Of a stretch of DNA of 64,000 nt, positions 2,396 to 61,466 are shown in pieces. Where the stretch lies: assembly GCF_006345805.1 (NCBI RefSeq), contig NC_043012.1:27218001-27282000 (forward strand), read 5' to 3'. Within the stretch, counting starts at the first letter, position 1, and the number at the start of each line of letters is the position of its first letter. The position numbers and the translations under genes were made by a program. The DNA comes from Octopus sinensis (Eukaryota). Under the pieces are notes generated by a model that had not been told where the DNA came from, searched no databases, and saw only the letters and a list, made by a program, of their open reading frames with translations.

Positions 2396-4828
2396 AACAT
2401 CCGTGGTCCGTGCTGGCATGGGTTGGACAGTTTGACTGGACTGATACGCTAGAAGGCTGCGCCAGGATCCAGTCTGAGTTGGTATGGTTTTCTATGGCTG
2501 GATGCCCTTCCTAACGCTAACCACTCCTAGAGTGTAATGGGTGCTTTTATGTGCGACCAGCACAGGTGCCATTTGCGTGACACTGGTATCTGCCACAACC
2601 ATGATTTTGCTTGGCTTGATAGATCTTCTCTCAAGCACGACATAATGCTAAAGGTTTTGGTCATTGCCTCCATGAGGTCCAACACTTGAAAGGAGTCAGC
2701 CACCTCACCTCCATGAGGCCCAAAACTCAAAGGGAACTCAGCCACTTTGCCTCCATGAGGTCCAACACTCGAAAGGAACTCAGTCACTTTGCCTCCATCA
2801 GACCCAATGCTCAAAAGGTATTCAGCCATTTTGCCTCCATGAAGCCCGACATTCAAAGGTTGATTTGCATTTTACGTGCCACCAGCACATGTGCACTTGG
2901 CATGACAGGTCCACTTAAGCAGAGCACATCGCCAAAGGTCTCGGTCACTAGGCATTGCCTCTGTGAGGTTCAAAGTTCGAAGGTCATGCTTCACTGCCTC
3001 ATCCAATGTCTTCTTGGGTCTACCACTATTACAGATCCCCTCCGCAGTTAGAGATTGGCACTTCTTTACACAACTGTCCTTGTCCATATGCATCACATGA
3101 CTATACCAGTGCAGTAATCTCTCTTCCACACCACATCTGATTCTTCTTATGCCAAACTTTTCTCTCAAGATGCTTACACTCTGTCAAACATGCACACTGC
3201 CATTGCACATCCAGTGAAGCATACTGGCTTCATTTCTCTCAAGCCTACATATGTCCTCGGGATCTGTGATTTGTCTGCCTTCCTACTTACTATGACTTCA
3301 GTTTTTGCTAGGTTAACTCTAAGGCCGTTTGATTCTAGACCTTGTTTCCATACCTGGAACTTCTCTAACTATAAGAGCAAGGTCATCAACATAGAGGAGC
3401 TCCTAGGGGCAGCCTGTCTTGAATTCCTCAGTTATTCCCAGGTGGACTATGATAAAAAAGAGGGGACTGAGCATCGATCCTTGGTGAACCCCTACTTGTA
3501 ACCTGAATTCTTCGCTGTACTTGTTGCCAACCCTCACCTTACAGGTAGTAGCTTGTACAACTCTCATCAACCACTCGTCTATCCTAGTTTCCTCATTGAC
3601 CACCAGATAACAGATTGAGGTCTCTCAAAAGCTTCCTCCAAGTCATCAAAAGCTAAGTACAGAGGTTTATCTTTGGCTAGGTATTTCTCCTGAAGTTGCC
3701 TTACCAGAAATATAGCATCAGTGGTGCTTCTCCTTGGCACAAAACCAAACTGCATCTCATCTAGACTAATTCTCCCACTAATTGGTTGGGCTATGACTCT
3801 CTCCATAACCCACATCACCTGACCCAACAATTTGATACCTCTGTAATTATTTCTATCTAAGGTATCACCTTTACCTTTGCAGCAGCTGACTATGGTGGTA
3901 CTACACCAGTCATTGGGTATGACTCCTTCACGACCCACCTGATTTACAATATGGGTGACAAGACAACCTACACTGCCAGATATTTTAAGCAACTCAGCAA
4001 TGATTCCTGATGGGCCAGGGGCTTTCCCTGCCTTCATATCCTTAATTGCTTTATCTACCAAGGCACTGTCAAGTCAGATAGCTGATCCCTCAGTTGGGTC
4101 AACATTTGGCAGACTCTCCTCCTCCCATTCATTCTCCACATTCAGCAGTCTTTCATAATGGCATCTCCAAGCCTCTTTCTTTGCAGATTCATTAAAAGCA
4201 AGTGCACCATCATCCATGCAGACACATTTCTCTCCTATGACATCACAATTTTCTCTCATACACTATCTTGCAATCTGAATAGAGGCAAACTTCTTTTGTG
4301 TTTCTCCCTTGGCCCTGAATATAAGCAAACATCGTTTCTGCTTCTCCCTTGGCTAGATATACTTGTCCCCTAGCTTCCCTTCTGGCTATCTGATTCAGTT
4401 CCCTGCTGCTCCGACTCTTCCAGGCCTGTTTCTTTGTTCTAATGGTCCTATCTACGGTATTGTTCCACCACCACATTACCCTGGGTCTGGAAGGGACTTT
4501 GCACCAGTCACTTATTTGGTCTGTGGTACTCAGCAAGCTGTCTCACAGGAATTACCAGTTGCCCTCTGTGTCACAAGTTTGTAGTTCTTCCTCCTTCTCA
4601 TCAAATTTCTCAATTAGAATGTCTCTAAATCTCTAACCATATGAAGGGTTCTTAAGCTTTCAGATCCTTCTTTTCCAGATTGGTTTGCTTCTTGGCATTG
4701 TTCTGGCCTGAAGTCTAAAGTCATTAACAACTAGTCTATGTTATGGGGTACATTCTTCACCAGGGAGAGTCTTTGCATTTAAGAGCAACCATGCATCCTG
4801 CTATCTGGTGAGAATGAAATCTATCTGG

Positions 4829-7260: not shown

Positions 7261-8165
7261 GAAGGTGGTGAGCTAACAGAATCGTTAGCATTCTGGACAA
7301 AATGCTTAGTGGTATTTTGCCCGTCACTACGTTCTGAATTCAAATTCTGCCAAGGTTGACCTTGTCTTTCTTCCTTTTGGGATTGATAAAATAAGTACCA
7401 GTGAAACACTGAGGTTGATGTAATCGACTAGTCCCCTCTCCCTAATTTCAGGCCTAGTGCCTATAGTAGAAAGGATTATTATTATTATGGCTAAGGTAGC
7501 AAGCTGGCAGAATCATTAGCGCACTGGGTGAAATGCTTAGCTGTATTTCGCCCATTGCTATGTTCTGAGTTCAAATTCCGCTGAGGTCAACTTTGCCTTT
7601 CATCCTTTCAGGATCAATTAAATAAGTACCAGTTACACACTGGAGTTGATGAAATCGACTTAATCCCCCTAACCTCAAGCTGCCCTTGAGGCAAAAATTT
7701 AAAATCATCATTATTATTATGGCTAAGGTGATGAGCTGGCAGAATCATTAGCATGCCAGACAAAATACTTAGCTTGGCAGAACTGATAGCACACCGGGCG
7801 AAATGCTCAGCGGTATTTCGTCTCTTGTTACATTCTGAGTTCAAATTCCGCCGAGGTCGACTTTGCCTTTCATCCTTTCGGGGTCGATTAAATAAGTACC
7901 AGTTATGCACTGGGGTCGATATAATCGACTTAATCCGTTTGTCTGTCCTTGTTTGTCCCCTTGTGGGTAATAAAGAAATAAGTATTTCATCTGTCTTTAG
8001 ATTTTGAGTTCAAATTCTGCTGAGTTCGACTTTTCCTTTCATCCTTTCGGGGTTGATGTTATAGGCACCAGCTGAGAACTGGGATTGAAATAATTGATGA
8101 GATCCCTCCCCTAAAAAATTTCAGGTCTTGTGCCTATAACAGAAAGAATTATTAAAATGGCTCTT
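7240..8165 (+). mobile_element. Tandem and nested cluster of 5-6 copies of the Nin-like SINE
   Basis: Repeated head gctggcagaatc(g/a)ttagc near 7271, 7502 and 7736; young nested copy about 7772-7980; (ATT)n tails between copies. Confidence 0.85.
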
Positions 8166-8265
8166 NNNNNNNNNNNNNNNNNNNNNNNNNNNNNNNNNNN
8201 NNNNNNNNNNNNNNNNNNNNNNNNNNNNNNNNNNNNNNNNNNNNNNNNNNNNNNNNNNNNNNNNN
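8166..8265. other. Assembly gap (100 N)
   Basis: Run of N. Confidence 1.
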
Positions 8266-9509
8266 ATATACATATATATATACATATATATATACATATA
8301 TATATACATATATATATAAATATATATACATACATATACATACATATACATACATATATATACATATATATAACAGTACATTATATATACTATATATATA
8401 TACATATATTATTACAGTATCTATATATAATATATATATATACATATGATTTATACATATATATATATACATATCTATATAGACATATATATAATACATA
8501 TATATATATACATATATATATATACATTATATATTATACATATATATATATACATATATTATATATACATAATATATACATTATATTATATTTATACATA
8601 TATATATATACATATATATCTATACATATATATATTACATATATATATATACATATATATATATACCATATAATATAATATATATATAATAACCATATAG
8701 ATTATATATATATATACATATATATATATACATATATATATACATATATATATATACATATATATATATACAATATATATATACAGATATATATATCTAC
8801 ATATATATATATAACATATATATAGATTATACATATATATAGATATACAATATATATTACATATATACATATACAATATAATATCCATATATATATATAC
8901 ATATATACATAAACATATATACATATACATATATACATATATATATATACATATATATATACTACATATATATATACACATATATATACACATATATATC
9001 ACATATATATATACACATATATATATACACAATATATATATACAACATATATATATACAATATATATATACATAATATATTATACATAATATATATACAT
9101 ATATATATAACATATTATATATATATATACAACATACATATATACATACATATATACATCATTACATATATATATATACATATATATATATACATATATA
9201 TATATACATATATATATATAACATATATATATATACAATATATATATAGACTATATAATAACATATAATTATAATAATATATACATATATATATTCTATA
9301 TATTACATACATATAATACATACATATATATAAATATATACATAATATAAATAATATTACATATATATAAATATATACATATATATAAATATATACATAT
9401 ATACATATATACATATATATAAATATATACATATATACATATATATACATATATACACATATATACATATATATACATATATATATATACATATATATAC
9501 ATACATATA
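8266..9509. repeat. Degenerate (TA)n/(TACATA)n low-complexity tract
   Basis: Almost only TA, CA and TACA units for about 1.25 kb; the I/Y/H-rich ORFs here are artefacts. Confidence 0.97.
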
Positions 9510-12968: not shown

Positions 12969-13238
12969 TGTAGTGTGAAGAAGACACCAGAAAAAGAAGC
13001 AAACGGGAGAAAGAAATACAAAGACCTTACCTCTTGACCTAGGCGGAATGAGCGATCACTGTCAAGAAATAAACACATCCTTGCACGCTGCCGTCTCTGC
13101 TCAAATTGCCCACACGTGCTTCCTGCCCACGCATGCACCGTGGCTGTTCCATCGGCCCCTGCAGTCTTCACTTCCATCTACCTCATCTGCAATCTCTCCA
13201 CCAACACCACATAGCTCATCATAGTCCATAACACCACA
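12969..13238 (-). repeat. 3' LTR (270 bp, TG...CA)
   Basis: Minus strand begins TGTGGTG and ends CTACA; aligns to 16837-17064. Confidence 0.88.
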
Positions 13239-13252
13239 CGCCCCCCCCCCCC
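13239..13252 (-). other. Polypurine tract
   Basis: G12-CG on minus immediately 5' of the 3' LTR. Confidence 0.85.
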
Positions 13253-13356
13253 GATCTACAGATCATTCAACCCGCTTCCCACTCACTCCTCGCTCCCGAA
13301 CTCACACCTTAACTGGTTTCATAATCGGCCAACCAGGGAGGAGGGTGCCACTCCCT

Positions 13357-14265
13357 CTAGTCGCTGTGCAATCCCGGGACTGGCATGCTGCTGCTGGCTT
13401 CATCATCTTTCCTACTGTTGCTGTCTTCATCTTCTTGCTCACTGCTGCTGATTTTATCCTCTGAGGCATTGACAATCTTCTGCACATCCAAAACGTGGCA
13501 TGGCATACCTTCGACATAGACATCGTTCTTCGAATTGATGAAGGTTATTGTTCCCTTTCCCCATCGTGATGTACACCGTGCATTTGGGGGTTTTACCCAA
13601 ACTTCTACCCCAACCTGCATGAAGGCATGCTCTTCCTCTACCCCAGGTTGCATTGATGCAGTACACGGATGCCTCCACTCATACCTGAATATTGCCGTGT
13701 GGCACCGACTCTTCAGCCTGTCCTGACCTGGGTGACATATTGTACCAAAATATAGTCTCGATTGGTGAAATGTGGCCCCTCTCTGCCATGGTCTTGATGG
13801 TACTATGATGCCTTTCCACCACCCCATTTCCACTTGGCCAGTATGCCGCCCTGAAGAAACAGTTGACCTGCCACCCATCAAGCATTTCTTTCAGCACCTC
13901 TGAGTGAAATGCAGTGCCATTATCCAGAAACAGTTCATCCACGGGGCTTCGTTCCAGGAATATCTCATTCAATACTTTCACTATTTCCACTGCGGTCCCC
14001 GTCTTCAACTCCCTCCATATGGCCAACAGCCCTGGTCCGCAGTCATTGAGAGGTATGTTCCCTGCCGGTAGTGTGTTATGTCCACTGCCACTTGTTTCCA
14101 ATCGTGGTCCACTGGAATACTTCCCGCCTCATGTACACTCGGAGCAGGGTCGATGGACTGGCACCTGTCACAGCTGCTAACCACTCTCTGCACACTCCAT
14201 CTTGTTACATCAGTGTCAACTTTTCTGGCTAGGAACAACATCCTGTCCACCCCCATGTGATGCAT
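13357..14265 (-). pseudogene. Gypsy integrase remnant (frameshifted)
   Basis: HHMG...CDRC zinc finger; VDITHY; LFLDNGTAF; SGNGVVERHHSTIK (DDE core). Confidence 0.88.
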
Positions 14266-16188
14266 GAATATGCAATCTTCTCAACTCCAAGTCACTCAAA
14301 CAGCATACTGCAGCTGCATCCTGCTCCGCATCCTCTGGCACCTGCAACCAGGCTCGCTTTACCCTGGTCAGGACGTCTGCCCTGTTATTCTTGGAAGGCA
14401 CAAAGATCATGCTCAGCTTCAGATCGAATTCAGCGGTTAGTTCATGCAGTATCCCCAATCAACGCTTTACCAACATCTCTACGGCCCCTTTGGTTCACAC
14501 CCTCTGCTCATTGGTGATGACTGCTGTCACCCAACCAAGTACAGTGGCTGAATCGGTTCTGATTTCTATGGTGCACAGTCCCCACTTCAATGCTAGGTTC
14601 ACTCCCTTCAACACGGCATCCAACTCCGCTACATTGATATGATTGCAGTCATCCATTTTCCTGAGCCAGGCTGCATCTTACACCACGACGCCTCCAACTT
14701 TCAAGACAACTCCTATTGCGATGCTACTGGCATCACACCATACAATCCTGCTCTTTGATTTGGGAACATACCAACTGCCCCTCACTGAATCCTCTGCTCT
14801 CACTCTGATCAAGACTTCCTGTATCATGCCGGTCGTCTTCTCCCCCACTCAATCGTTCCACTTTGGTTCATCTCTTGATGAAGTTACATGCTGTCTGGAG
14901 CCATCCTGCAATTGGGTAGTGTCCCACCAGCTTCCCACACACCGAGAAAAGTTCCCATCTACTTGTGTTGCTGCCCAGTTCGGGGATCTCGTTCCCTCAC
15001 CAGAACACCAATGCGCCGGCCTTGTCTCTCCATAGCTTGAGGCCCAGTTCAGCGCCTCCCTCCATTGCCTCTGGTGGCTTGGCGATCAGTCCCAAACTCT
15101 TCAGGTGGCCTATGATCTCTGTTGCTGGAATTACGATTTCATCCACCAGAATGTCATCAATGTACGAATTGGTGGCCCTTTTTACTCTGTCCACCTTTCC
15201 CAGGATGGCCTTGAGAATTGTTGCCATAATCTTTGGCGCTGAATTTAGCCTGAACCCCAACCTGGTCAGACAGTATGTCCAGCTCTTATACCTGACAAGC
15301 TGATACGTCCAATCTCTCAGCCACATGCACCTGCAGGTATGCTGACTTCAAATTGACGATCATGGAGGCCCCTTTCATCTGCCTCCACTCTTGCAAGGTG
15401 TCCCCACAGACATCTGTGGCCTCGCTACCCGTATGACAATATACGTGGTCATTCAGCTCTCGGAAGTCAAGCACTGGCCTGACCTTATGCTTTGTGGGCT
15501 GTACCAGTGCCATCAATGGCAGGACTCCGCTCTCTACTTCTCCTTCCCAAGGGATCAATATACCCTCCTTAATCCACTGCTCCACCTCCTCCTCGAACTT
15601 ACTTCTGGCATCTCCTTTTAGAATATGCTGATAGCAGCCCACTTTATTTTCTAACATCGGGGGCTCTCCCTTCCAGTGCCACTCCACTGTCCACATCTGG
15701 CCATCGAAGTCCTGGTCTTCAATGGCGTGTGCAGTATACTTTTCACGGTTCTCACCAATGCACAGTCTCACCATACACGGTTTCCCCGCAAACCCGAATG
15801 TTACACCGGCCTCGTTGACAGTGATACCTCCTAAATGGGTGATTGCATCCATCCCCATCACCACATCAATCTCGTCCACCAAGTGGCCAACTACTGTTGC
15901 TCGCAGCGTCAGCTTTGTTCCCTGCACCACAATCTGCGCATCTGTAATGCCTTCACAGTGTACCTCTCTTCCGTCGACTGCTCTTACACTGCTTTCTCCA
16001 CTCCACATCTCTACCACTTCTGTACATCGTGACATCTTCCCCATCACCAGAATGTCGACTACAGGTAATGATGATAAACGCGCCTCTATTGATTCAAAGG
16101 GATAACTACCGGCGCAGTAGTCTCTCTTAGACTGTTTCCCTGCGGACGTTCGCTGGCTATATGCCCTGTTTCTTGACACTGGTAGCAA
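14216..16188 (-). pseudogene. Gypsy protease-RT-RNase H remnant (frameshifted)
   Basis: RPVLDFRELN, LKSAYLQV, RLGFRLNSAP, YIDDIL, NNRADVLTR. Confidence 0.88.
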
Positions 16189-16800
16189 ATGACCTCAGGC
16201 TTGGGTGACTTGGGTACCATGTGCGGGCCCTGACACCGGAAACACTGTCCCTTGAATGGTTGCACACGTTCCTTGTTTGACCCCTCTCTGCTACTCCTTG
16301 CTTGGCCACTTTTCGTTGTTGCAGTCACTGCTACCAGCATCGTCCTAGCATGCAAGCCTGAGATACAATGTCTGCCATCGCCATAGAGTTAATGTTTGGT
16401 AGCTTTTGCAACTCGACCGACATGTGGTCAGGAAGGCCAGTCACAAACGCTAACTTAACCATTCAGTCTAGTGATTCTCCCTCATATCCCGCCAGTTTAG
16501 CCAATCTTCTGAGATTGTTCGCAAATACATCAACCTGTTCGCCAGTCCACTTTGCTTTCCCTCTGCAAAGGTCTCCATCAAACGGATTTCTATTTTTTCT
16601 GCACTAAGTTGGTCCCTCTCTTCCATTTCTAGCTACAGCGCCAACGCCGAACCATCTAGGTACAGCGGTATAAAGCTCGCTAAGTCGCTTATACCGTGGA
16701 GCGTCGCAACCAACTTCATCTTCTTCAACCAAGCGACTACATCAGTGTCACCACAAAATGGTTTGACCATATTGTTCGAAATACGGACTACACTCATCAT
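16086..16800 (-). pseudogene. Gypsy gag remnant with two zinc knuckles
   Basis: ATG at 16800 (MMSVVRISNNMVKPFCGDTDVVAWLKK...); CFRCQGPH and CYQCQETGH motifs; internal stops. Confidence 0.85.
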
Positions 16801-16824
16801 TGGTTTTTTTTGTTGTTGTTATGG

Positions 16825-16836
16825 GCCGAAATAGCT
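16825..16836 (-). other. Putative atypical primer-binding site complementary to tRNA-Phe nt 1-12
   Basis: Element strand reads LTR-CA|AGCTATTTCGGC; its complement GCCGAAATAGCT equals the 5' end of metazoan tRNA-Phe(GAA) as recalled. Confidence 0.65.
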
Positions 16837-17064
16837 TGTAGTGTGATGGAGGAAGAAGGCAACAGAAAAAGAAGTAAAAGTGAGAAAGAAATACAAAGAC
16901 CTTACCTCTTGACCTAGGCGGAATGAGCGATCACTGTCAAGAAATAACCACGTCCTTGCATGCTGCCGTCTCTGCTCGAACTGCCCGCATGTGCTTCCTG
17001 CCCATGCATGCCCCATGGCTGTTCCACCAGACCCTGCAGTCTTCACTTCCATCTACCTCATCTG
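16837..17064 (-). repeat. 5' LTR, outer part missing (about 40 bp)
   Basis: Homology to the 3' LTR stops at ctacctcatctg, then mariner sequence follows. Confidence 0.85.
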
Positions 17065-17639: not shown

Positions 17640-17940
17640 ATCATCATCATCATCATCATCATTTAACGTCCGCTTTCCATGCTAGCATGGGTTGGACGGT
17701 TCAACTGGGGTCTGGCAAGCCCGAAGGCTGCACCAGGCCAGTCAGATCTGGCAGTGTTTCTACAGCTGGATGCCCTTCCTAACGCCAACCACTCCGAGAG
17801 TGTAGTGGGTGATTTTATGTGCCACCGACACAGGTGCCAGACGAGGCTGGCGAACGGCCACGCTCGGATGGTGTTTTTTATGTGCCACCGACACTGGTAC
17901 CACAAAGATACAAATTCCATTGATGTTCATCTATTTTGAT
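17640..17940 (-). mobile_element. Young RTE 3'-UTR tail copy
   Basis: (cat)n tail; near identity to 60743-61230. Confidence 0.85.
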
Positions 17941-19799: not shown

Positions 19800-20060
19800 G
19801 TTGCATCATCATCATCATCATCATCATCGTTTAACATCCGTTTTCCATGCTAGCATGGGTTGGACAGTTTGACTGGGATCTGGGAAGCCATAAGGCTGCA
19901 CCAGGCTCCAGTCTGATCTGGCAGTGTTTCTACAGCTGGATGCCCTCCCTAACAGCAACCACTCCGTGAGTGTAGTGGGTGCTTTTTTCGTGCCACTGGC
20001 ACAGGTGCCAGGCGAGGCTGGCAACGGCCATGATCGGATTGGTGCTTTTTACATGCCACC
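19800..20060 (-). mobile_element. RTE 3'-UTR tail copy
   Basis: (cat)n tail and conserved ggttgctgttagggagggcatccagctgtagaaac. Confidence 0.8.
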
Positions 20061-20081
20061 ATATATATATATTTATATATA

Positions 20082-20520
20082 TTGGGTTGTCAGGAAAGTT
20101 CGCATCGAGTTTTAGAGGAAAGAAAAAGGTCAATAAATACTTGCCATTACATTTTTAATCAACCAGATATAAACCACTTTGTTGCACAATGTGTCTCCAT
20201 CTTTCCTTTAACTTGAAAATACCCTCTTCCCAGAATTGAGGTGGTTTCATGGCAAAGAATTCATCAAGGTATCTTTTTACGTGATCCAAGGAATTGAAAT
20301 TTTTACTATTAAGACTATTCTGCAGAGATGTGAATAAGTTGAAATCTGAAGGAACAATATTTGGTGAATATGGAGGGTGGGGTAACACATCCCAGCCGTG
20401 CTGCAGCAATTTTTGTCTGGTTCCCAAAGAAACGTGCGGTCTTGCATTATCATGTTGGAAAACAATACCCTTCCTGTTGGCCAATTCTGGATGTTTCTCT
20501 TGAATTGCTAAATCCTTTGT
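20082..20520 (-). mobile_element. Mariner 3' fragment with TIR
   Basis: QHDNARPH, HPPYSPNIVPSDFNLF; TIR ttgggttgtcaggaaagttc next to (TA)n; resembles 17065-17556. Confidence 0.88.
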
Positions 20521-20989
20521 GGATGGGAAGCCCAGGTAACCCCATAAAATGGCCTTCATCAGGAAAAAAAAATATATATATATATATATATATGCAGAAT
20601 ATGTATATATATAAATATATATATATATATGTGTGTGTATATATATATGTATGTATGATTATTATAATTATTTGTTTGCCTCGTTTGTTTTCGTCATTGT
20701 CCTGTACATTCATTAGCTATTCCCAGTGGATTTTTGCAACTGGTGTCTCCAAGAGAGAATGGTTTTAACAACAACGGCATGAAACTATCATGATCTCTAG
20801 GATGTTGATTGACAAGGAATTAGCTACAAATTTTTCATGTGTTATGGTTTTGTTAAATTTTACATTTATGTTTTTATTAAATCCTTGAAATATTATTTAT
20901 GTAATGCAATGCACTCCTTATATTTTTTACCAATATATATGTGTCACAATCACATGTAACAACAAATTTTTCACTCATCTCACCCCAAG

Positions 20990-23607: not shown

Positions 23608-24880
23608 GAGGGACGTTCAATAAGTAATGCCTCTGACCAACATGCAGTTGTTTGATCTAGCTGAAATTTTGCATGTGCAATTATTTATATCTCTATAGAT
23701 TAAGTGGCAAATTACAGCTCTGAACTAATTGTGGTTTCTGATTTACAGGTGTTTGAACTGAGTCAAATGTGAAATGGAGCCTGTTGAGTGTCGAGCAGTG
23801 ATCCGGTTTTTGTATTTGAAAGGACGCACACCACAGGAGACTTTTGATGAAATGAAAGTAACTTATGGTGATGATGCCCCATCATATGACCTTGTAAAAC
23901 GCTGGCATCATGAATTCAAACATGGTCGGAACTCTGTGGAAACAGCTCCCAGATCTGGTCGCCCCCTTCTGCCATTCATGAGGCATTTGTCCGTTAAGTT
24001 GAGGTTGCCATTTTGGAAGATCGACGCATAACTATTCGCCAAATAGCCCATTAGGTCAAGATTAGTACCAGGTCATGACCATTTGCATATGCAAAAGGTG
24101 TCTGCCAGATGGATTCCCAGGTTGCTCACACCTTTCCAGAAGCAAGAACGCGTCGAGTGCTCGAGGATGAATTTGGAGATGTGCCAAGAAGATGAGTCAA
24201 AATTTTTCAAAAGACTGATTACACAGGATGAAACCTGGGTCCATCACTATGATCCAGAGATCAAACCCCAGTCAATGCAGTGGAAGCACCATGACTCACC
24301 TCCTCCAAAGAAGGCAAGGGTTCAGCCCTTCGCTGGCAAGGTCATGCTCACAGTCTTCTGGGACCAGGACGGAGTAGTGATGACAGATTTCCTGGCAAAG
24401 GGTACCACAATTACAGGAGCCTATTATGCTTCACTTTTGAGGCAATTAAGAGAAGCTATCAAAATCAAGAGGCGGGGCTAGATCAGCAAAGGCATCCTCC
24501 TCCTGCAGTACAACACTCCAGTCTACAACTCACGTGTCGCCAGATCAGAAGCACAGGCGTGCGACTATGAACTCCTCCCCCATCCCCCTACTCTCCTGAC
24601 CTTGCACCCTCTGATTTTCACCTCTTCCCATCCATGAAGTTGTTTTTGAAAGGAAAGTGTTTCCCAGATGATGCAGCCTTGATTTCTGAAGTCACGTCGT
24701 GGTTGGAGGACTAAGCTGGGGTCTTCTACAAAAACGGTCTCCAGAGCTGCATCAAACGAGGGGAGAAATGTGTAACTCTGGGTGGTTCCTATGTAGAAAA
24801 AGACTAATAACTGTGCCAAGTTTCGTTGCTCTACTACTATGGGAAGTGGGTCAGGGGCATTACTTATTGAACGCCCCTCG
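23607..24880 (+). mobile_element. Near full-length mariner transposon (1274 bp), inactivated
   Basis: 32-bp TIRs (cgaggg(a/g)cgttcaataagtaatgcc(t/c)ctgacc); TA on both sides; transposase from 23774 with WIPRLL, TQDETW and PYSPDLAPSDF; stops and frameshifts. Confidence 0.95.
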
Positions 24881-41099: not shown

Positions 41100-41930
41100 C
41101 CTTCACTGGAGACACATTAAAAAAACATCACAGTTTGGGGATCTTGGTTATCATATTACATGGGACATCACATGGATTGTAAACAAAGCCCCTGTTGTTC
41201 TGTGTCATGAAGCTGGTCCTGGCAGAAGTTCTTTTCATCAGGTCAACAGGATGACTCAAATTGTTCGGGGGCCTCGCCTGTCAGAATTTGTCCCTTGCAC
41301 CTCTTGTAGGAGTGGTATCATAGGTCCTCATTCAGTACTAGCTTCATGGTGGTGATTCCAACACCCATCTCTCTTGCCAAAGCCTGATTCCCTTGCTTAG
41401 ATTTTCCATCACCTTGTACTGCAAGTGTTGAATGAATTCCAGTGAGTGGACATCATCAAAATTCCTCTGTGTAAGTCCACCAAGGAGCTCATGATGACCC
41501 CCTTTTTTGATCATCTACCTCTATTTGGTTCCCTCTGGCCAGATGGTCAACAAAGAGTACTTTGTGGAGGTTTTGAAGAAGTTCAGGAAGAGATTTTGTT
41601 GCAAAAGGCCAGAGCACTTGCACCAATCCATAATTCCATCCTGATAATCAACTACTTGACAGAGATGGGCATCAAGACTATCTCTCACCCTATATACACT
41701 CCAGACCTTGCTCTCTGTGACTTCTAGTTGTTCCCCATGCTGGAGGAGATGAAGGAGGCTGTAACAAGGGTCCTGGACACCTTCATTTCAAAGGACTTCC
41801 ATGAGGCCTTCATGAAGTGGCTAGAGTGCTACAAGTGCAAAAGATCCTACTTTGAAGGAGATTAGAGTTTTTGTATTTCTTTGAAATTAAAAAATGTCTC
41901 TTCTGTAAAACTCCGAAAACTTCTGGAATG
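41100..41930. mobile_element. Rearranged mariner remnants (minus and plus pieces)
   Basis: HPIYTPDLALCDF on plus (41446-41727); upstream minus-strand mariner-like sequence. Confidence 0.6.
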
Positions 41931-48890: not shown

Positions 48891-49108
48891 CACACACACA
48901 CTTTATTAACAAAATTGCAAAGACATAACATAAAACTGTTACTCAGAATTTCACATTCCTGTTCTTTAAGAATGGGATCATGAAACAGGCTTTGTGATAT
49001 ATTTGCAGCTTTATTTATAAAGCATATTACTCTACCTCTAGAGTACTTTTTTTCCCACTTTGTTTCACATTTAAGGTCTTACTCTGGTATATATATGCGT
49101 GTGTGTGT

Positions 49109-49175
<67 letters not shown>

Positions 49176-49201
49176 TTATATATATATATAATATATGTAT
49201 G

Positions 49202-49237
<36 letters not shown>

Positions 49238-49240
<3 letters not shown>

Positions 49241-50783
49241 CCTTGCTCAAATTGCTGAATCACTATTAGAACTCGAGGTGAAGTTTCAGGCGTGGAAGCA
49301 AGGATTAGAATCGAAGGGCCTTAGAGTCAATCTAGCTAAAACCAAAGTCCTAATAAGTAGGAAGGTAGACAAATCTCGAATACCTTCAGGTAGATGGCCC
49401 TGCTCGATCTGTAGAAAAGGCGTAGGTAGGAACTCTATAAGATGCACCAAGTGTAAGCTATGGACACATAAGAGGTGCAGCAATGTCAAAGGAAGGATAA
49501 CTAGGAAGATAGTTTTTGTATGTGGCAGATGCTCTGGTTCAATAAAGACTGAAAATGCGCAGAGACCATCTTCCGCCACATTCCAGGGAGAAAAACTTGA
49601 AATAGTTGATAGTTTCCGTTACCTAGGTGACCGAGTCAGTATAAAGCAGGTGGGTGTACCGAAAGTGTAACTGCTAGAGTAAGAATAGCCTGGGCAAAGT
49701 TCAGAGAGCTCTTACCTCTGCTGGTGACAAAAGGCCTCTCGCTCAGAGTAAAAGGCAGACTGTATGACGCATGTGTGCGAACAGCCATGCTACATGGCAG
49801 TGAAACATGGGCCGTGACTGCTGAGGATATGCGTAAGCTCGCAAGAAATGAAGCCAGTATGCTCCATTGGATGTGTAATGTCAGTGTTCATACCCGACAG
49901 TGTGTAAGTGCCTTGAGAGAAAAGTTGAACCTAAGAAGCATCATATGTGGTGTGCAAGAGAGGCGTCTACGCTGGTATGGAGACGTAGTAAGAATGGATG
50001 AAGATAGTTGTGTGAAAAAGTGCCACACCCTAGCGGTTGAGGGAACCTGTAGAAGAGGTAGACCCAGGAAAACCTGGGATGAGGTGGTGAAGAACGACCT
50101 TCGTGCTTTAGGTCTCACCGAGGAAATGACCAGAGACCGAGACCTTTGGAAGTATGCTGTGCACGAGAAGACCCGGCAGGACACGTGAGGCCATAACCCA
50201 TGGCCCCTACCTGGGACGTAGTCAGTCCATCTGTGCATACCTTCCTTCTTGGGACACATAACTCTACTTGTGAAGTCCTGTTGAGGCAAGTGAAAATCAA
50301 ATCAAATCAAAATCGATGAACATCAATGGAATTTGTATTTTCGTGGTACCAGTGCCGGTGGCACGTAAGAAAACCATCCGAATGTGGCTGTAGCCAGTAC
50401 CGCATCGACTGGCCTCCGTGCTGTGGGCACGTAACAAACACCATCCGATCGTGGCCGTGCCAGCCTCGCCTGGCCTCTGTGCCAGTGGCACGTAAAAAAC
50501 ACCATCCGAGCGTGGCCGTTCGGCAGCTTCGTCTGGCACCTGTGTCGGTGGCACAAAATAACAACATCCGAGCGTGGCCGTTCGCCAGCCTCATCTGGCA
50601 CCTGTGTCGGTGGCACATAAAAAGCACCCACTACGCTCACGGAGTGGTTGGCGTTAGGAAGGGCATCCAGCTGTAGAAACTCTGCCGACTGGCCTGGTGT
50701 AGCCTTTGGGCTTGCCAGACCCCAGTTGAACCGTCCAACCCATGCTAGCATGGAAAGCGGACGTTAAACGATGATGATGATGA
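49238..50783 (+). mobile_element. Young 5'-truncated RTE LINE in a (TA)n tract
   Basis: Nearly intact ORF end (49238-50188, disrupted near 49650-49720) with a Cys-rich finger; 3' UTR with (aaatc)n and about 63-bp repeats; (GAT)n tail. Confidence 0.95.
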
Positions 50784-50922
50784 TATATATATAATTTAAA
50801 TTAGAGATAAAACCACTATAACAATGAAAAACATAAACCAAAACATAAAAATTATATATATAATAATAAATATATATATGAATAAAAAAATGGAGTTAAC
50901 GCAGGTGTAATCAAATATTTTT

Positions 50923-51008
50923 ACTTTCGACACATGTTTCGAAAATTCCACTGATACTATTCAAAAGAATAAATGGTATAAACAATGCAATCTTCTCCTC
51001 AGGAAAGT
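50923..51008 (-). ncRNA. Type I hammerhead ribozyme fold, sense to the SHOC2 intron
   Basis: Stem I ACUUUC/GAAAGU (6 bp); CUGAGGA 51002-50996; stem II 7 bp plus 5 bp closed by G-C; GAAA 50940-50937; stem III AC-augu-GU; GUC site. Confidence 0.75.
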
Positions 51009-51127
51009 GAAAAAAACGAAACTCGTCAATAAGACATTTTAGCAAAAAATGATGGATTTGTATAGCAATAGACAGAACGCTATTAATATTGTTAACAAGG
51101 TAAAAATACACTTATCTATTAATAAAT

Positions 51128-51540
51128 ATATATATCAATGGAATTTGTATCTTTGTGGTACCAGTGCCAGTGGCATACAAGAAAACCATCCGAACGTGGC
51201 CGTAGCCAGTACCGCATCGACTGGCCTCCGTGCTGTGGGCACGTAACAAACACCATCCGATCATGGCCGTTCGCCAGCCTCATCTGGCACCTGTGTCGGT
51301 GGCACATAAAAACACCATCCGAGCGTGGCCGTCTGCCAGCCTCGTCTGGCACTGTGTCGGTGGCACATAAAATCACCCACTACACTCTCGGAGTGGTTGG
51401 CGTTAGGAAGGGCATCCAGCTGTAGAAACACTGCCAGATCTGACTGGCCTGGTGCAGCCTTCGGGCTCCTCAGACCCCATTGGAACCGTCCAACCCATGC
51501 TAGCATGGAAAGCGGACGTTAAATGATGATGATGATGATG
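51128..51540 (+). mobile_element. Young RTE 3'-UTR tail copy
   Basis: Near identity to 50320-50783 and 60743-61230. Confidence 0.88.
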
Positions 51541-51602
51541 ATATATATATATATACATACATATATGTATGTGTATATATATATATGAGTGTATATATAC
51601 AT

Positions 51603-53834: not shown

Positions 53835-54774
53835 CATACACACACAGAGAAATGATGATGGCTGTCCACTTGTAACTGAGGAAGACCATGACTAACTACT
53901 GCCCAAGCACGAGGTTATTACAGATACAGACATCAGGTGCAGTCTTCTGCCTGTCAAACCATCCAATCCATGCCAGCATGGAAGGCGGACATTAAATGAT
54001 GATGATGATATATATATTCAATTATGATTAAAGGATAAAATAGTTTAAAATTTCATCAGTGGCCAGCATATAAAATAGACCTATTTAGGTAAATTCATAT
54101 ATAGAGATTTATAATAGTATAAAATACAATTATAATTAAAGGTACAGAGGGGACTATGCCTATACACTGAAAATAGATGCTAAATTGTCCAACCACTCCA
54201 AATTATCACCTTATAATACACACATGTTGAAAGCGAAGATGTAGACTGACAGAAATTCATAAAATAATTCAGATAGTTTTGGATTGATCAATGCCCAAGG
54301 TGCAATGCAGTGGGACTGAACCTCGAACTATGTGGTTGAAAGGCAATCTTCTTATCACACAGTCATGCCTGTACCTATATGTATATTAATTACTGGTAGG
54401 GACATCGTATTTGGCTTTCCCCACCCTAATACACTACCAAGCATATTAAAGGTTTATAAGTCAATACTGTTCTACTTTTGTGTTAGTAATGTGATTCAAT
54501 GACTTTTAAGTTATCTTCTAGATAACTTTTAGATCCAAACTTGAAAGTTACAATGTTTTGTATACAAATATATCCATGTAAACAATGCAACTGAAGATAG
54601 AAAAATAGATAATGGATGTATATAACTCCTATTCATCATAGTCCTCCAGGCAATAACAGAGTAATTCAAGATAAGCTGCCCCTGGGAGCTCCTCTATGCT
54701 GATGACCTTGCTTTAATAGTTATTGCTCCTTCTTCAGCACCACATCCAACCCAGTAACTATCCAGCAATCATCA

Positions 54775-57150
54775 TCATCCTCCTCCTCCACATCATCGTT
54801 TAATGTATGTTTTCCATGCTGGCATGGGTTGGACAGTTTGACTGAGGACTGGCAAGCCAGGAGGCTGCGCAAGGCTCCAATCTGATCTGGCATTAATTAT
54901 ACAGCTGGATGCCCTTCCAAATGCCAAACACTCTGAGAATGTAGTGGGTACTTTTTACATGCCACCGGCATGGGAGCCAGTCAGGTAGCACTGGCATTGA
55001 CCATGTTCAGATGGCGTTTTTTACATGTCGCTGGCACAGGAGCCAGTCAAGCAGCACTGGCATTGACCCATGCTTGAATGGTGCTTATCATAGGTGTCAG
55101 TCAGGTGGCATTGGCCACAACTACAATTTCCAATTTAATTTTCGACTTTACTTGACTCAATAGGTCTTCTCAAACACAGCATATCGCCTAACGATTCAAG
55201 GGTACTTTTAAATGGGCTGTTTATGCAACACTGGTATCAGCTATGGCTGTGATCTCACTTTACTTGCCAGGGCCTCTCAAGCACAGTATATCTCTAAAGG
55301 TCTCAATCTCTTGTCATTGCCTCTGTGAGGCCCAATGTTTGAAGGTTGTGCATCACCACCTCATTCCATGTCTTCCTGGGTCTACCTCTTCCACAGGTTC
55401 CTTCCACTGTTAGGGTGTGGCACTTCTTCAGACAGCTCTCCTCTTCCATACGCAGCACATGACCATAACAGTGCAGTCATCTCTCTTGCACATCACATCT
55501 GATGTTTCTTATGTCTTATGAGGGCGTTTACACTCTGCTGTGTATGCACACTAACATTATACAATCAGTGATTCATACTAGCTTCACTTCTTTCAAGCCT
55601 ACATATGTCCTCAACAGACATGGCCCATGGTATCACTGCCATGTAGCATGCCTGTTCACACATATGCGTCAGTCTACCTTTCACTCTGAGCGAGAGGCCC
55701 CTTGTTACCAGCAGAGGTAGAGTTTTCTGAACTTTGCCCAGGCTATTCTTATTCTAGTGGCTATGCTCCCAGAGCATCTACTCCCACTACAGACTTGGTC
55801 ACCTAGGTAGCAGAAGCTATCAACTACTTGTAGTTCCCTACCCCCTGGCATATGATGGAATCTGTTTTCTGTACATCTTTGGTATTTATTGCCCCTGTGC
55901 ATCTACCACACACAAAAACTATCTTCCCGGTTAACCTTCCTTTGATATTGCTGCACCTCTTATGCAACCATAGTTTACACCGGGTACAACTTACGGAGTT
56001 TCTACTTACCCCTTTGTACAGATCAAGCAGGGCCATCTACCTGAAGAAGTTTGTAATTTGTCTGCCTTCCTACTTACTAGGGTTTTGGTTTTTGTTAGAT
56101 TGACTCTAAGGCCCTTTGATTCTAGACCTTGCTTTCACACTTGAAACTTCATCTCTAGTTCTGGTAGTTACTCAACTATTAGAGCAAGGTCATCAGCATA
56201 GAGGAGCTCCCAAGGGCAGCCAGTCTTGAATTTCTCTGTTATTGCCTGGAGGACTATGATGAATAAGAGGAGGCTGAGGACTGATTGTTGATGAACCCCT
56301 GGAATTTTTCACTATACTCATTGCCAGCCCTCACCTTACTGACAGCATCTTTGTACAGAGCTTGTACAGCTCTTACCAACCACTTGACTATCCCTGGTTT
56401 CACTTGACCACCAGGTAAGGGATTGGGGGACCCTGTCAAAGGCTTTCTCCAAGTCAACAAAAGCCAAGTACAAAGGTTTATCTTTGGCTAGATATTTCTC
56501 CTGCAGTTGCCTTACCAGAACTATATCATCAGTGGTGTGTCTACCTGGTACAATACCAAACTGCATCTCATATAGGCTAATTCTCTCCCTAATTAATTGG
56601 GCTATGAACATCTCCATGACCATCACCTGATTCAGCAAGTAGTTATTTCTATCTAAAGAATCACCCTTTACCTTTGTAACAGTTGACTACAGTGCTGCTA
56701 TACTAGTCATTGGGGTATGACTCCTTTGTGAACTAACTGATTTACAATACAGATATTTTAAGCATCTCAGCAGTGATTTCTGATGGGCTGGGGGCTTTCC
56801 CTGTCTTTGTATCCTTAATTGCTTTATCTACCAGGGTACTGTTGATTCGGGTAGCTGGTCCCTCAGTTGGGTCAACATTTGGCAGACGCTCCTCCTCCTA
56901 TTCATTCTCCATATTCAGCAGTCTTTCATAATGGCATTTCCGAGCCTTTGTCTTTGCAGAATCATTAAATGCAAGGGCACCATCATCCATGTGGACACAT
57001 TTGTCTATGACATCATGAGTTTCTCTCACACACAGTCTTGGAATCCAAAATACTTCAGTTCTTTGGTCCTTACGTCGCTGAACATTGGCAAACTTCTTCT
57101 TTTCTGTTTAGATGCATTAGGCTGGCCATGTAGTGCATATGGAAGATAAG
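54775..57150 (-). mobile_element. Degenerate RTE LINE
   Basis: ORF pieces 56336-56638 (RQLQEKYLAKDKPLYLAFVDLEKAFDRVP), 55824-56036, 55705-55902; (cat)n tail. Confidence 0.9.
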
Positions 57151-60742: not shown

Positions 60743-61466
60743 CATCATCATCATCATCATCGTTTAACGTCCGCTTTCCATGCTAGCATGGGTTGGACGG
60801 TTCAACTGGGGTCTGGCAAGCCCGAAGGCTGCACCAGGCCAGTCAGATCTGGCAGTGTTTCTACAGCTGGATGCCCTTCCTAACGCCAACCACTCCGAGA
60901 GTGTAGTGGGTGATTTTATGTGCCACCGACACAGGTGCCAGACGAGGCTGGCAGACGGCCACGCTCGGATGGTGTTTTTTATGTGCCACCGACACAGGTG
61001 CCAGACGAGGCTGGCTGACGGCCATGCTCGGATGGTGTTTTCTTATGTGTCACCGACACAGGTGCCAGACGAGGCTGGCGGACGGCCACACTCAGATGGT
61101 GTTTGTTACGTGCCCTCAGCACGGAGGCCAGTCGTTGCGGTACTGGCTACGGTCACGTTCGGATGGTTTTCTTATGTGCCACCGGCACTGGTACCACAAG
61201 GATACAAATTCCATTGATGTTCATCTATTTTGATTTGGTTCGATTTGATTTGATTTGATTCGATTCGATTCTCACTTGCCTCAACAGGTCTTCACAAGTG
61301 TCACAAGAAGGAAGGTATGCACAGGTGGACTGACTACGTCCCAGGTAGGGGCCACGGATTATGGCTTCACTAGTCTTGCCGGGTCTTCTCACGCACAGCA
61401 TACTTCCATAGGTCTCGGTCTCTAGTCATTTCCATGGTGAGACCTAACGTCCGAAGGTCGTGCTTA
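60743..61466 (-). mobile_element. Young RTE 3' end (last codons and 3' UTR)
   Basis: Reverse-complement match to 50095-50783; (cat)n tail. Confidence 0.92.

Follow-up and report, generated by a model that had tools for sequence, protein, structure and literature searches.

A candidate orphan type I hammerhead in a transposon-rich intron of octopus SHOC2

We examined a hammerhead-like motif in a 64-kb stretch of Octopus sinensis DNA (this whole analysed stretch is hereafter the window), and our leading, still tentative explanation, held with a little less than even confidence, is that it is an orphan minimal type I hammerhead, likely decayed and retroelement-derived, that sits as a passive passenger in a transposon-rich intron of SHOC2. 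It would descend from a Penelope-like element or from a hammerhead of the retrozyme or satellite kind, which are common in invertebrate genomes. As only one copy is present and tertiary contacts are lacking, with helix II oversized, helix III of 2 bp, and other hairpins in competition, the active fold would rarely be adopted, so that cleavage of the SHOC2 pre-mRNA would be slow or absent at cellular Mg2+. A regulatory role is not expected. The main rival to this orphan-retroelement reading is a chance match, in which boxes reading CUGANGA and GAAA, together with short complementary U-rich and A-rich runs, lie by accident around a stable AT-rich hairpin of the intron that has neither ribozyme ancestry nor activity; we regard this as distinctly possible.

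Motif architecture

Read along the minus strand from 51008 to 50923, the motif is ACUUUC-CUGAGGA-(55-nt hairpin)-GAA-ACAUGUGU-C/GAAAGU, with the slash at the predicted scissile bond (Table 1). An earlier sequence-only reading of the window had described a complete core with a perfect 6-bp stem I, a 12-bp interrupted stem II closed by a G-C pair, a GUC site after 50929, and a 2-bp stem III with a palindromic ACAUGU, and each of these structural statements was borne out. By direct reading and in a descriptor search, all hammerhead core nucleotides are present (C3 U4 G5 A6 N7 G8 A9, G12 A13 A14, A15.1-U16.1, and H17), and the topology is that of a type I hammerhead, with open ends at helix I. Helix I consists of 6 perfect pairs, worth only -3.9 kcal/mol as a duplex by itself, and beyond it inspection finds only a C.A mismatch. 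The 12 pairs of helix II described earlier resolve into 7 bp, a G.G mismatch, and 5 bp from the closing G10.1-C11.1 pair, and are followed by a 3-nt bulge, 4 bp, a C.A mismatch, and 5 bp before a 6-nt loop, which adds 4 and 5 further pairs. Helix III has 2 bp that close the tetraloop AUGU, and when G.U pairs are allowed its 8-nt segment is wholly self-complementary, so that two copies of the motif could make an 8-bp intermolecular helix III. No bulged or unpaired nucleotide of the kind seen in some known hammerheads is present. The sequence position of the GUC triplet is as described earlier, and hammerhead numbering places the bond to be cut at 50929/50928. Were the motif to cleave, it would do so by the standard hammerhead mechanism, in which the 2'-OH of C17 attacks its own 3' phosphate; the upstream fragment would then end at 50929 with a 2',3'-cyclic phosphate, and the downstream fragment would start at 50928 with a 5'-OH.

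Table 1. Positions of motif elements, SHOC2 features, and SINE copies in the window
Feature	Positions	Strand	Basis or remark
Helix I 5' strand ACUUUC (2.6-2.1)	51003-51008	-	perfect pairing with GAAAGU 50928-50923
Core box CUGAGGA (C3-A9, N7=G)	50996-51002	-	exact CUGANGA match
Helix II, 55-nt imperfect hairpin, G10.1-C11.1 closing pair	50941-50995	-	RNAfold
Core G12 A13 A14	50938-50940	-	direct reading
Helix III region ACAUGUGU: A15.1-U16.1, C15.2-G16.2, AUGU loop	50930-50937	-	direct reading
C17 of GUC triplet; predicted scissile bond 50929/50928	50929	-	hammerhead numbering
Helix I 3' strand GAAAGU (1.1-1.6)	50923-50928	-	direct reading and descriptor
SHOC2 exons	61831-61764, 36230-36061, 35936-35898	-	tblastn, splice-site inspection
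SHOC2 host intron, 25,533 nt	36231-61763	-	flanking exons 100% identical to A0A0L8H9M8; GT/AG boundaries
SINE copy, low-coordinate border of motif block	50322-50784	+	direct repeats D3, D5, D6, D7
SINE copy, high-coordinate border of motif block	51134-51539	+	direct repeats, recurring SINE core
Other SINE copy	~53968-53996	+	recurring core
Other SINE copies	17662-17690, 19830-19858, 60763-60791	-	recurring core

The helix II hairpin folds at -14.6 kcal/mol (RNAfold), with z=-3.8 and p ~0.0015 against shuffles of the same 55-mer. A stability so unusual for its composition would also suit another reading, to which we give hardly any credence, namely that the 55-nt hairpin is an RNA or DNA element of another kind (an inverted repeat of a transposon, a C/D snoRNA, or the precursor of an intronic miRNA) whose likeness to a hammerhead is incidental. 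The C/D snoRNA family snR75 does give a sub-threshold Rfam match that overlaps the hairpin in the same orientation (20.2 bits, E=0.14), but 20.2 bits is half of what gathering requires, and at the scale of the whole window the match lacks significance. On inspection, no C box and D box stand at a spacing that would serve a C/D snoRNA. For a pre-miRNA, the folding energy is weak over 55 nt and no miRNA family in Rfam matched the hairpin, and for a transposon inverted repeat we found neither terminal inverted repeats nor other copies beyond the TA microsatellite.

Chance expectation and searches for relatives

The motif is the sole descriptor match on either strand of the window, loose settings included. 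Its chance expectation was estimated from dinucleotide shuffles, Markov sequence, and permuted cores (Table 2), and the permuted-core scan is the most realistic of these controls because it retains the real hairpin content.

Table 2. Chance matches to the hammerhead descriptor under three controls, by minimum length of helices I, II, and III
Control	Setting	Matches
300 dinucleotide shuffles	I ≥4, II ≥3, III ≥2	0.033 per window
300 dinucleotide shuffles	I ≥5, II ≥4	0.007 per window
300 dinucleotide shuffles	I ≥6, II ≥4	0 of 300 shuffles
40 Mb Markov sequence	I ≥4, II ≥3, III ≥2	0.054 per window
Markov, extrapolated	I ≥6, II ≥7	~2e-4 per window
719 permuted cores, real window	I ≥4, II ≥3, III ≥2	0.054 per core
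719 permuted cores, real window	I ≥6, II ≥4	0.007 per core
719 permuted cores, real window	I ≥6, II ≥7	0.0014 per core (single match)

By these estimates such a motif is unlikely to arise by chance in one 64-kb window (p ~0.001-0.007), which speaks against a chance match at the level of the window. However, at the decoy-core rates of 0.0014-0.007 comparable three-way junctions per core per window, tens of equally good chance motifs would be expected per genome at an octopus genome size assumed to be ~2.7 Gb, and chance becomes a serious rival if many windows were scanned. The composition of the motif points the same way. All of its helices are AT-rich and of low information (GAAGAUU/AAUUUUC in helix II, ACUUUC/GAAAGU in helix I), and a near-palindrome (TTTCGAAACATGTGTCGAAA, also delimited as UUUCGAAACAUGUGUCGAAA) feeds several of their pairings, providing helix III along with portions of helices I and II. 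Moreover, among low-GC 55-mers of the window, 3.7% reach the stability of the helix II hairpin, and a long helix II spacer is typical of what a permissive descriptor picks up.

Set against these points are three features that the search did not use and that nevertheless match real hammerheads, namely the G10.1-C11.1 pair, the self-complementary helix III segment, and the GUC triplet. From base composition we estimate that the first would occur in ~9% of random pairs and the second in ~15% of random segments, and GUC is the commonest natural hammerhead triplet; taken together, the three would lower the chance rate by an estimated ~100-fold, to ~one per genome. The controls also have a calibration value of their own, in that a letter-perfect core with good helices arises by chance at ~10^-3 per 64-kb window, so that conservation or cleavage data are needed before function is inferred from such a match.

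Searches for relatives were negative throughout the material covered. At the gathering score, Rfam 15 gave no hammerhead or other ribozyme in the whole window, and none of the models Hammerhead_1, Hammerhead_II, Hammerhead_3, HH9, and HH10 matched at E<=10 in the 1.2 kb around the motif (50400-51600). As a 55-nt helix II incurs a heavy insertion penalty, this miss counts against membership in a canonical family and not against the fold itself. A blastn search with 50770-51140 found no second copy in the 64-kb window, returning only TA low-complexity matches, and hammerhead and dimer-type minimal descriptors, widened to a bulged nucleotide and to a U3-A8 variant of the core, found no further match there. 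No tandem repeat was found near the motif, where the only repeats are two SINEs and a TA microsatellite, and in metagenome contigs 0 relatives came out of two pattern scans, which allowed for a long or a short helix II. Among 10 selected neighbouring ORFs, none carried a Penelope-like reverse transcriptase (RT) or GIY-YIG domain; these gave LINE-type RVT_1, PHD, or mariner matches, or nothing, although a heavily 5'-truncated Penelope-like copy might escape such a scan. The flanking (TA)n runs, considered as a Penelope target site, were given no weight, as 127 such runs occur in the window.

Predicted folding and comparison with known hammerheads

In the isolated 86-mer, the 6 bp of helix I and at least 7 bp of helix II are predicted to form, the hammerhead fold lies 1.3 kcal/mol above the MFE, and the pair probability of helix III is 0.03-0.04. 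With 50-200 nt of natural flanks, the probability of helix I drops to <=0.004 and the hammerhead fold is predicted at <=0.4%. In this context, the upstream U-tract is predicted to pair with GAGGAGAA, hiding most of CUGAGGA and the start of helix II in a competing hairpin over the core box (UUUUUUUCA/UGAGGAGAA), while the 3' strand of helix I is predicted to lie within a local downstream hairpin of its own. When folding was followed along the growing transcript, the hammerhead fold was never the MFE. Secondary-structure predictions for an intronic RNA in vivo are indicative only, and all of those made here agree in direction.

The proportions of helix II suggest a further handicap. In canonical metazoan hammerheads of type I, helix II has 4 bp and its loop docks on a loop in helix I, the contact to which they owe their speed at cellular Mg2+ (PMC4209133, PMC6155905). 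Inspection of the octopus motif finds 7 bp to the first internal loop and 21 bp to the terminal loop, against the canonical 4 bp; helix II is ~10x its usual length, and with a helix II of this size the canonical loop-loop contact cannot form in the known way. The alternative route of short-helix-III hammerheads, action as a dimer, needs a second copy, and the 64-kb window has none. The sequence-only reading had suspected that a monomer may be slow, a suspicion that the predicted helix III and flanked helix I probabilities reinforce, as does the single copy in the window; on these models the motif is probably weak or inactive as a monomer. A disfavoured fold in context, no Rfam match, and no second copy in the window are also what a chance match would give.

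What argues for ancestry is a set of hallmarks outside the descriptor, namely G10.1-C11.1, the palindromic 15.2-16.2 segment with loop 3, a 6-bp helix I, and a helix II of 7-8 bp as in Penelope-element hammerheads (criteria of PMC4209133). The minimal hammerheads of Penelope-like elements (Cervera & de la Pena 2014, PMC4209133) share with the octopus motif the type I topology, the lack of tertiary contacts, the conserved G10.1-C11.1 pair, a long helix II (7-8 bp in theirs), and a palindromic 15.2-16.2 segment that implies action as a dimer. They are mostly solitary and scattered in invertebrate genomes, as single copies from truncated elements, and their monomers have little or no activity in vitro, at levels described as low or undetectable (PMC4209133). 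The sequence-only reading was right that minimal hammerheads often act as dimers, as metazoan forms with a short helix III do (PMC4209133). Penelope-type hammerheads differ in that they form multi-copy consensus families and lie in pseudo-LTRs beside RT/GIY-YIG ORFs, whereas the octopus motif has a 6-bp helix I, a 55-nt helix II hairpin, no bulged nucleotide, and no Penelope-like ORF seen beside it.

A second comparison is with the type I hammerheads of retrozymes and satellites (newt, Schistosoma Sm-alpha, mussel, and coral; PMC7229834, PMC4209133), which likewise have an open 6-bp helix I, a GUC-type site, and a helix III of 1-2 bp whose small loop is palindromic, a 2-bp stem with a tetraloop being the invertebrate pattern. 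Unlike the octopus motif, they have a 4-bp helix II and a contact between loop 2 and helix I, are arrayed in tandem repeats of 170-400 bp in which dimers can form, and give circular RNAs; the octopus motif occurs once in the window, outside any tandem repeat, with no canonical loop-loop geometry and no Rfam Hammerhead_1 match. Some retrozyme hammerheads of molluscs do without the classic tertiary contacts (PMC7229834), and counts of type I hammerheads in invertebrate genomes run from hundreds to thousands, in Penelope-like elements and retrozymes. Hammerheads are also present in cephalopods, with 235 Rfam Hammerhead_1 matches in the giant squid genome (PMC6962438).

Several observations count against such an ancestry, among them the lack of an Rfam match, of a related copy in the window or the metagenome contigs, and of a Penelope-like ORF among those scanned. 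A 55-nt helix II is, moreover, very unusual for real metazoan hammerheads and resembles a chance match made through a permissive spacer. As to a retrozyme origin, the 352-nt block around the motif is not rod-like, its structure being unremarkable at z=-1.57. We nonetheless prefer the orphan-retroelement reading, and the motif is better viewed as one of the many orphan minimal hammerheads of invertebrate genomes than as a regulator of its host gene.

The SHOC2 intron and its neighbourhood

Three C-terminal exons of SHOC2 lie on the minus strand of the window, as located by tblastn and inspection of splice sites. Translation of an exon gives 57 residues with 100% identity to Octopus bimaculoides A0A0L8H9M8, and SHOC2 is the name given to related fragments. 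Homology searches towards a full-length cephalopod SHOC2 led to nematode proteins. The motif is on the same strand as these exons, as the sequence-only reading had stated in placing it on the pre-mRNA strand; the 5' splice site of the intron is 10.8 kb away from it and the 3' splice site 14.7 kb. Its immediate surroundings are a block at 50785-51133, set between two SINE copies of the same orientation and a TA microsatellite; the direct repeats D3, D5, D6, and D7 of the two SINE copies match at 84-94% identity. More widely, the neighbourhood is rich in SINE, LINE, mariner, and LTR-element debris, in keeping with the orphan-retroelement reading, and the intron itself holds LINE RT and PHD fragments and remnants of mariner transposase.

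This setting bears on whether the motif might be a domesticated intronic ribozyme, whose co-transcriptional cleavage would lower or modulate SHOC2 output, perhaps with the aid of proteins or of pairing between two transcripts, on the analogy of the conserved intronic hammerheads in amniotes. We judge this quite unlikely. In its favour are the sense orientation, the long intron, and an intact core with GUC, and ~14.7 kb would still have to be transcribed past the site. At the elongation rates of Pol II, that distance gives minutes, enough time even for a slow ribozyme. There is also precedent in introns of RECK, CTCL, and DTNB, the first two carrying the hammerheads known as HH9 and HH10 (PMC6155905), which share with the octopus motif the type I topology, the sense orientation, and a place in the intron of a protein-coding gene. 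The sequence-only reading had correctly stated that hammerheads occur in amniote introns, where conserved type I forms are described (PMC6155905). However, the amniote hammerheads are canonical, make tertiary contacts, are stable as monomers, have their own Rfam models, and are ultraconserved across birds, reptiles, and mammals, whereas the octopus motif fits no Rfam model, HH9 and HH10 included. Its contact geometry is missing, misfolding is predicted, and its site, between two SINE insertions, is repeat-rich DNA. In published experiments on intron ribozymes, moreover, the cutting of an intron reportedly need not block splicing, which we count against a regulatory effect. We also examined contigs with the orthologous exon from two distant species, of which one aligns in the exon only (77% nucleotide identity) and the other shows no alignment; the 10 kb preceding the exon contained no hammerhead in either, a weak test that also counts against domestication.

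Orientation and the intact core are thus the only points that speak positively for a regulator of SHOC2, and regulation is unsupported. Of the sequence-only reading as a whole, the structure, strand, host gene, and background stood, and the proposal that cleavage tunes SHOC2 output found no support, in view of the lack of an Rfam match and of contact geometry and an intron of ordinary SINE, LINE, and microsatellite content; nor was it refuted. A more specific form of domestication, which we consider very unlikely, is that a cephalopod independently domesticated a retroelement hammerhead with a long helix II, which would cleave nascent SHOC2 pre-mRNA, aided by proteins or by pairing between two transcripts, and modulate a Ras-MAPK scaffold. 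If this were so, no earlier conserved intronic ribozyme would be on record outside the amniotes. A motif that proved active and conserved would extend the range of conserved intronic hammerheads from amniotes to molluscs and offer a tractable example in which a signalling gene is acted on by a ribozyme.

Further observations concern the rest of the window. On the sense strand, a 66-aa ORF (50911-51111, minus strand) crosses the whole motif; we regard it as AT-rich noise, which automatic gene callers might annotate. The SINE family has at least 6 copies in the window, each with internal repeats of ~62 nt; CCATGCTAGCATGGAAAGCGGACGTTAAA is their conserved 3' core, and a (GAT)n run comes after it. 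Several miRNA families, among them mir-3149, mir-297, and mir-1277, give sub-threshold Rfam matches (~30 bits against gathering scores of 81-100) in the palindromic (TA)n/(TACA)n microsatellite at 51541-51600, and these are low-complexity artefacts and not miRNA genes. A 100-N assembly gap (8166-8265) falls within a ~1.4 kb microsatellite of TA/TG type (8100-9500), which gives long spurious 'YIYI' ORFs in several frames.

Among the remains of mobile elements, a transposase ORF of mariner/Tc1 type lies at 24083-24481 (plus strand; Pfam Transposase_1, E=8.6e-24), and similar mariner-like ORF parts were seen by eye at 23774-24031 (plus), 20155-20559 (minus), and 41446-41727 (plus). LINE fragments of one kind occur at 49095-50188 (plus), 55824-56638 (minus), and 2872-4061 (minus), with weak RVT_1 matches; the C-terminal part of this LINE carries a PHD-type zinc finger (PF00628, E=9e-6), and its C-terminal peptide is found three times in the window. 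Downstream of SHOC2, two direct repeats of 213 nt (12977-13189 and 16852-17064; 92% identical and 3,875 bp apart) enclose minus-strand ORFs that resemble retroviral pol, integrase-like and RT/protease-like by eye, with Pfam negative for both ORFs tested, and 12977-17064 is probably a decayed LTR retrotransposon.
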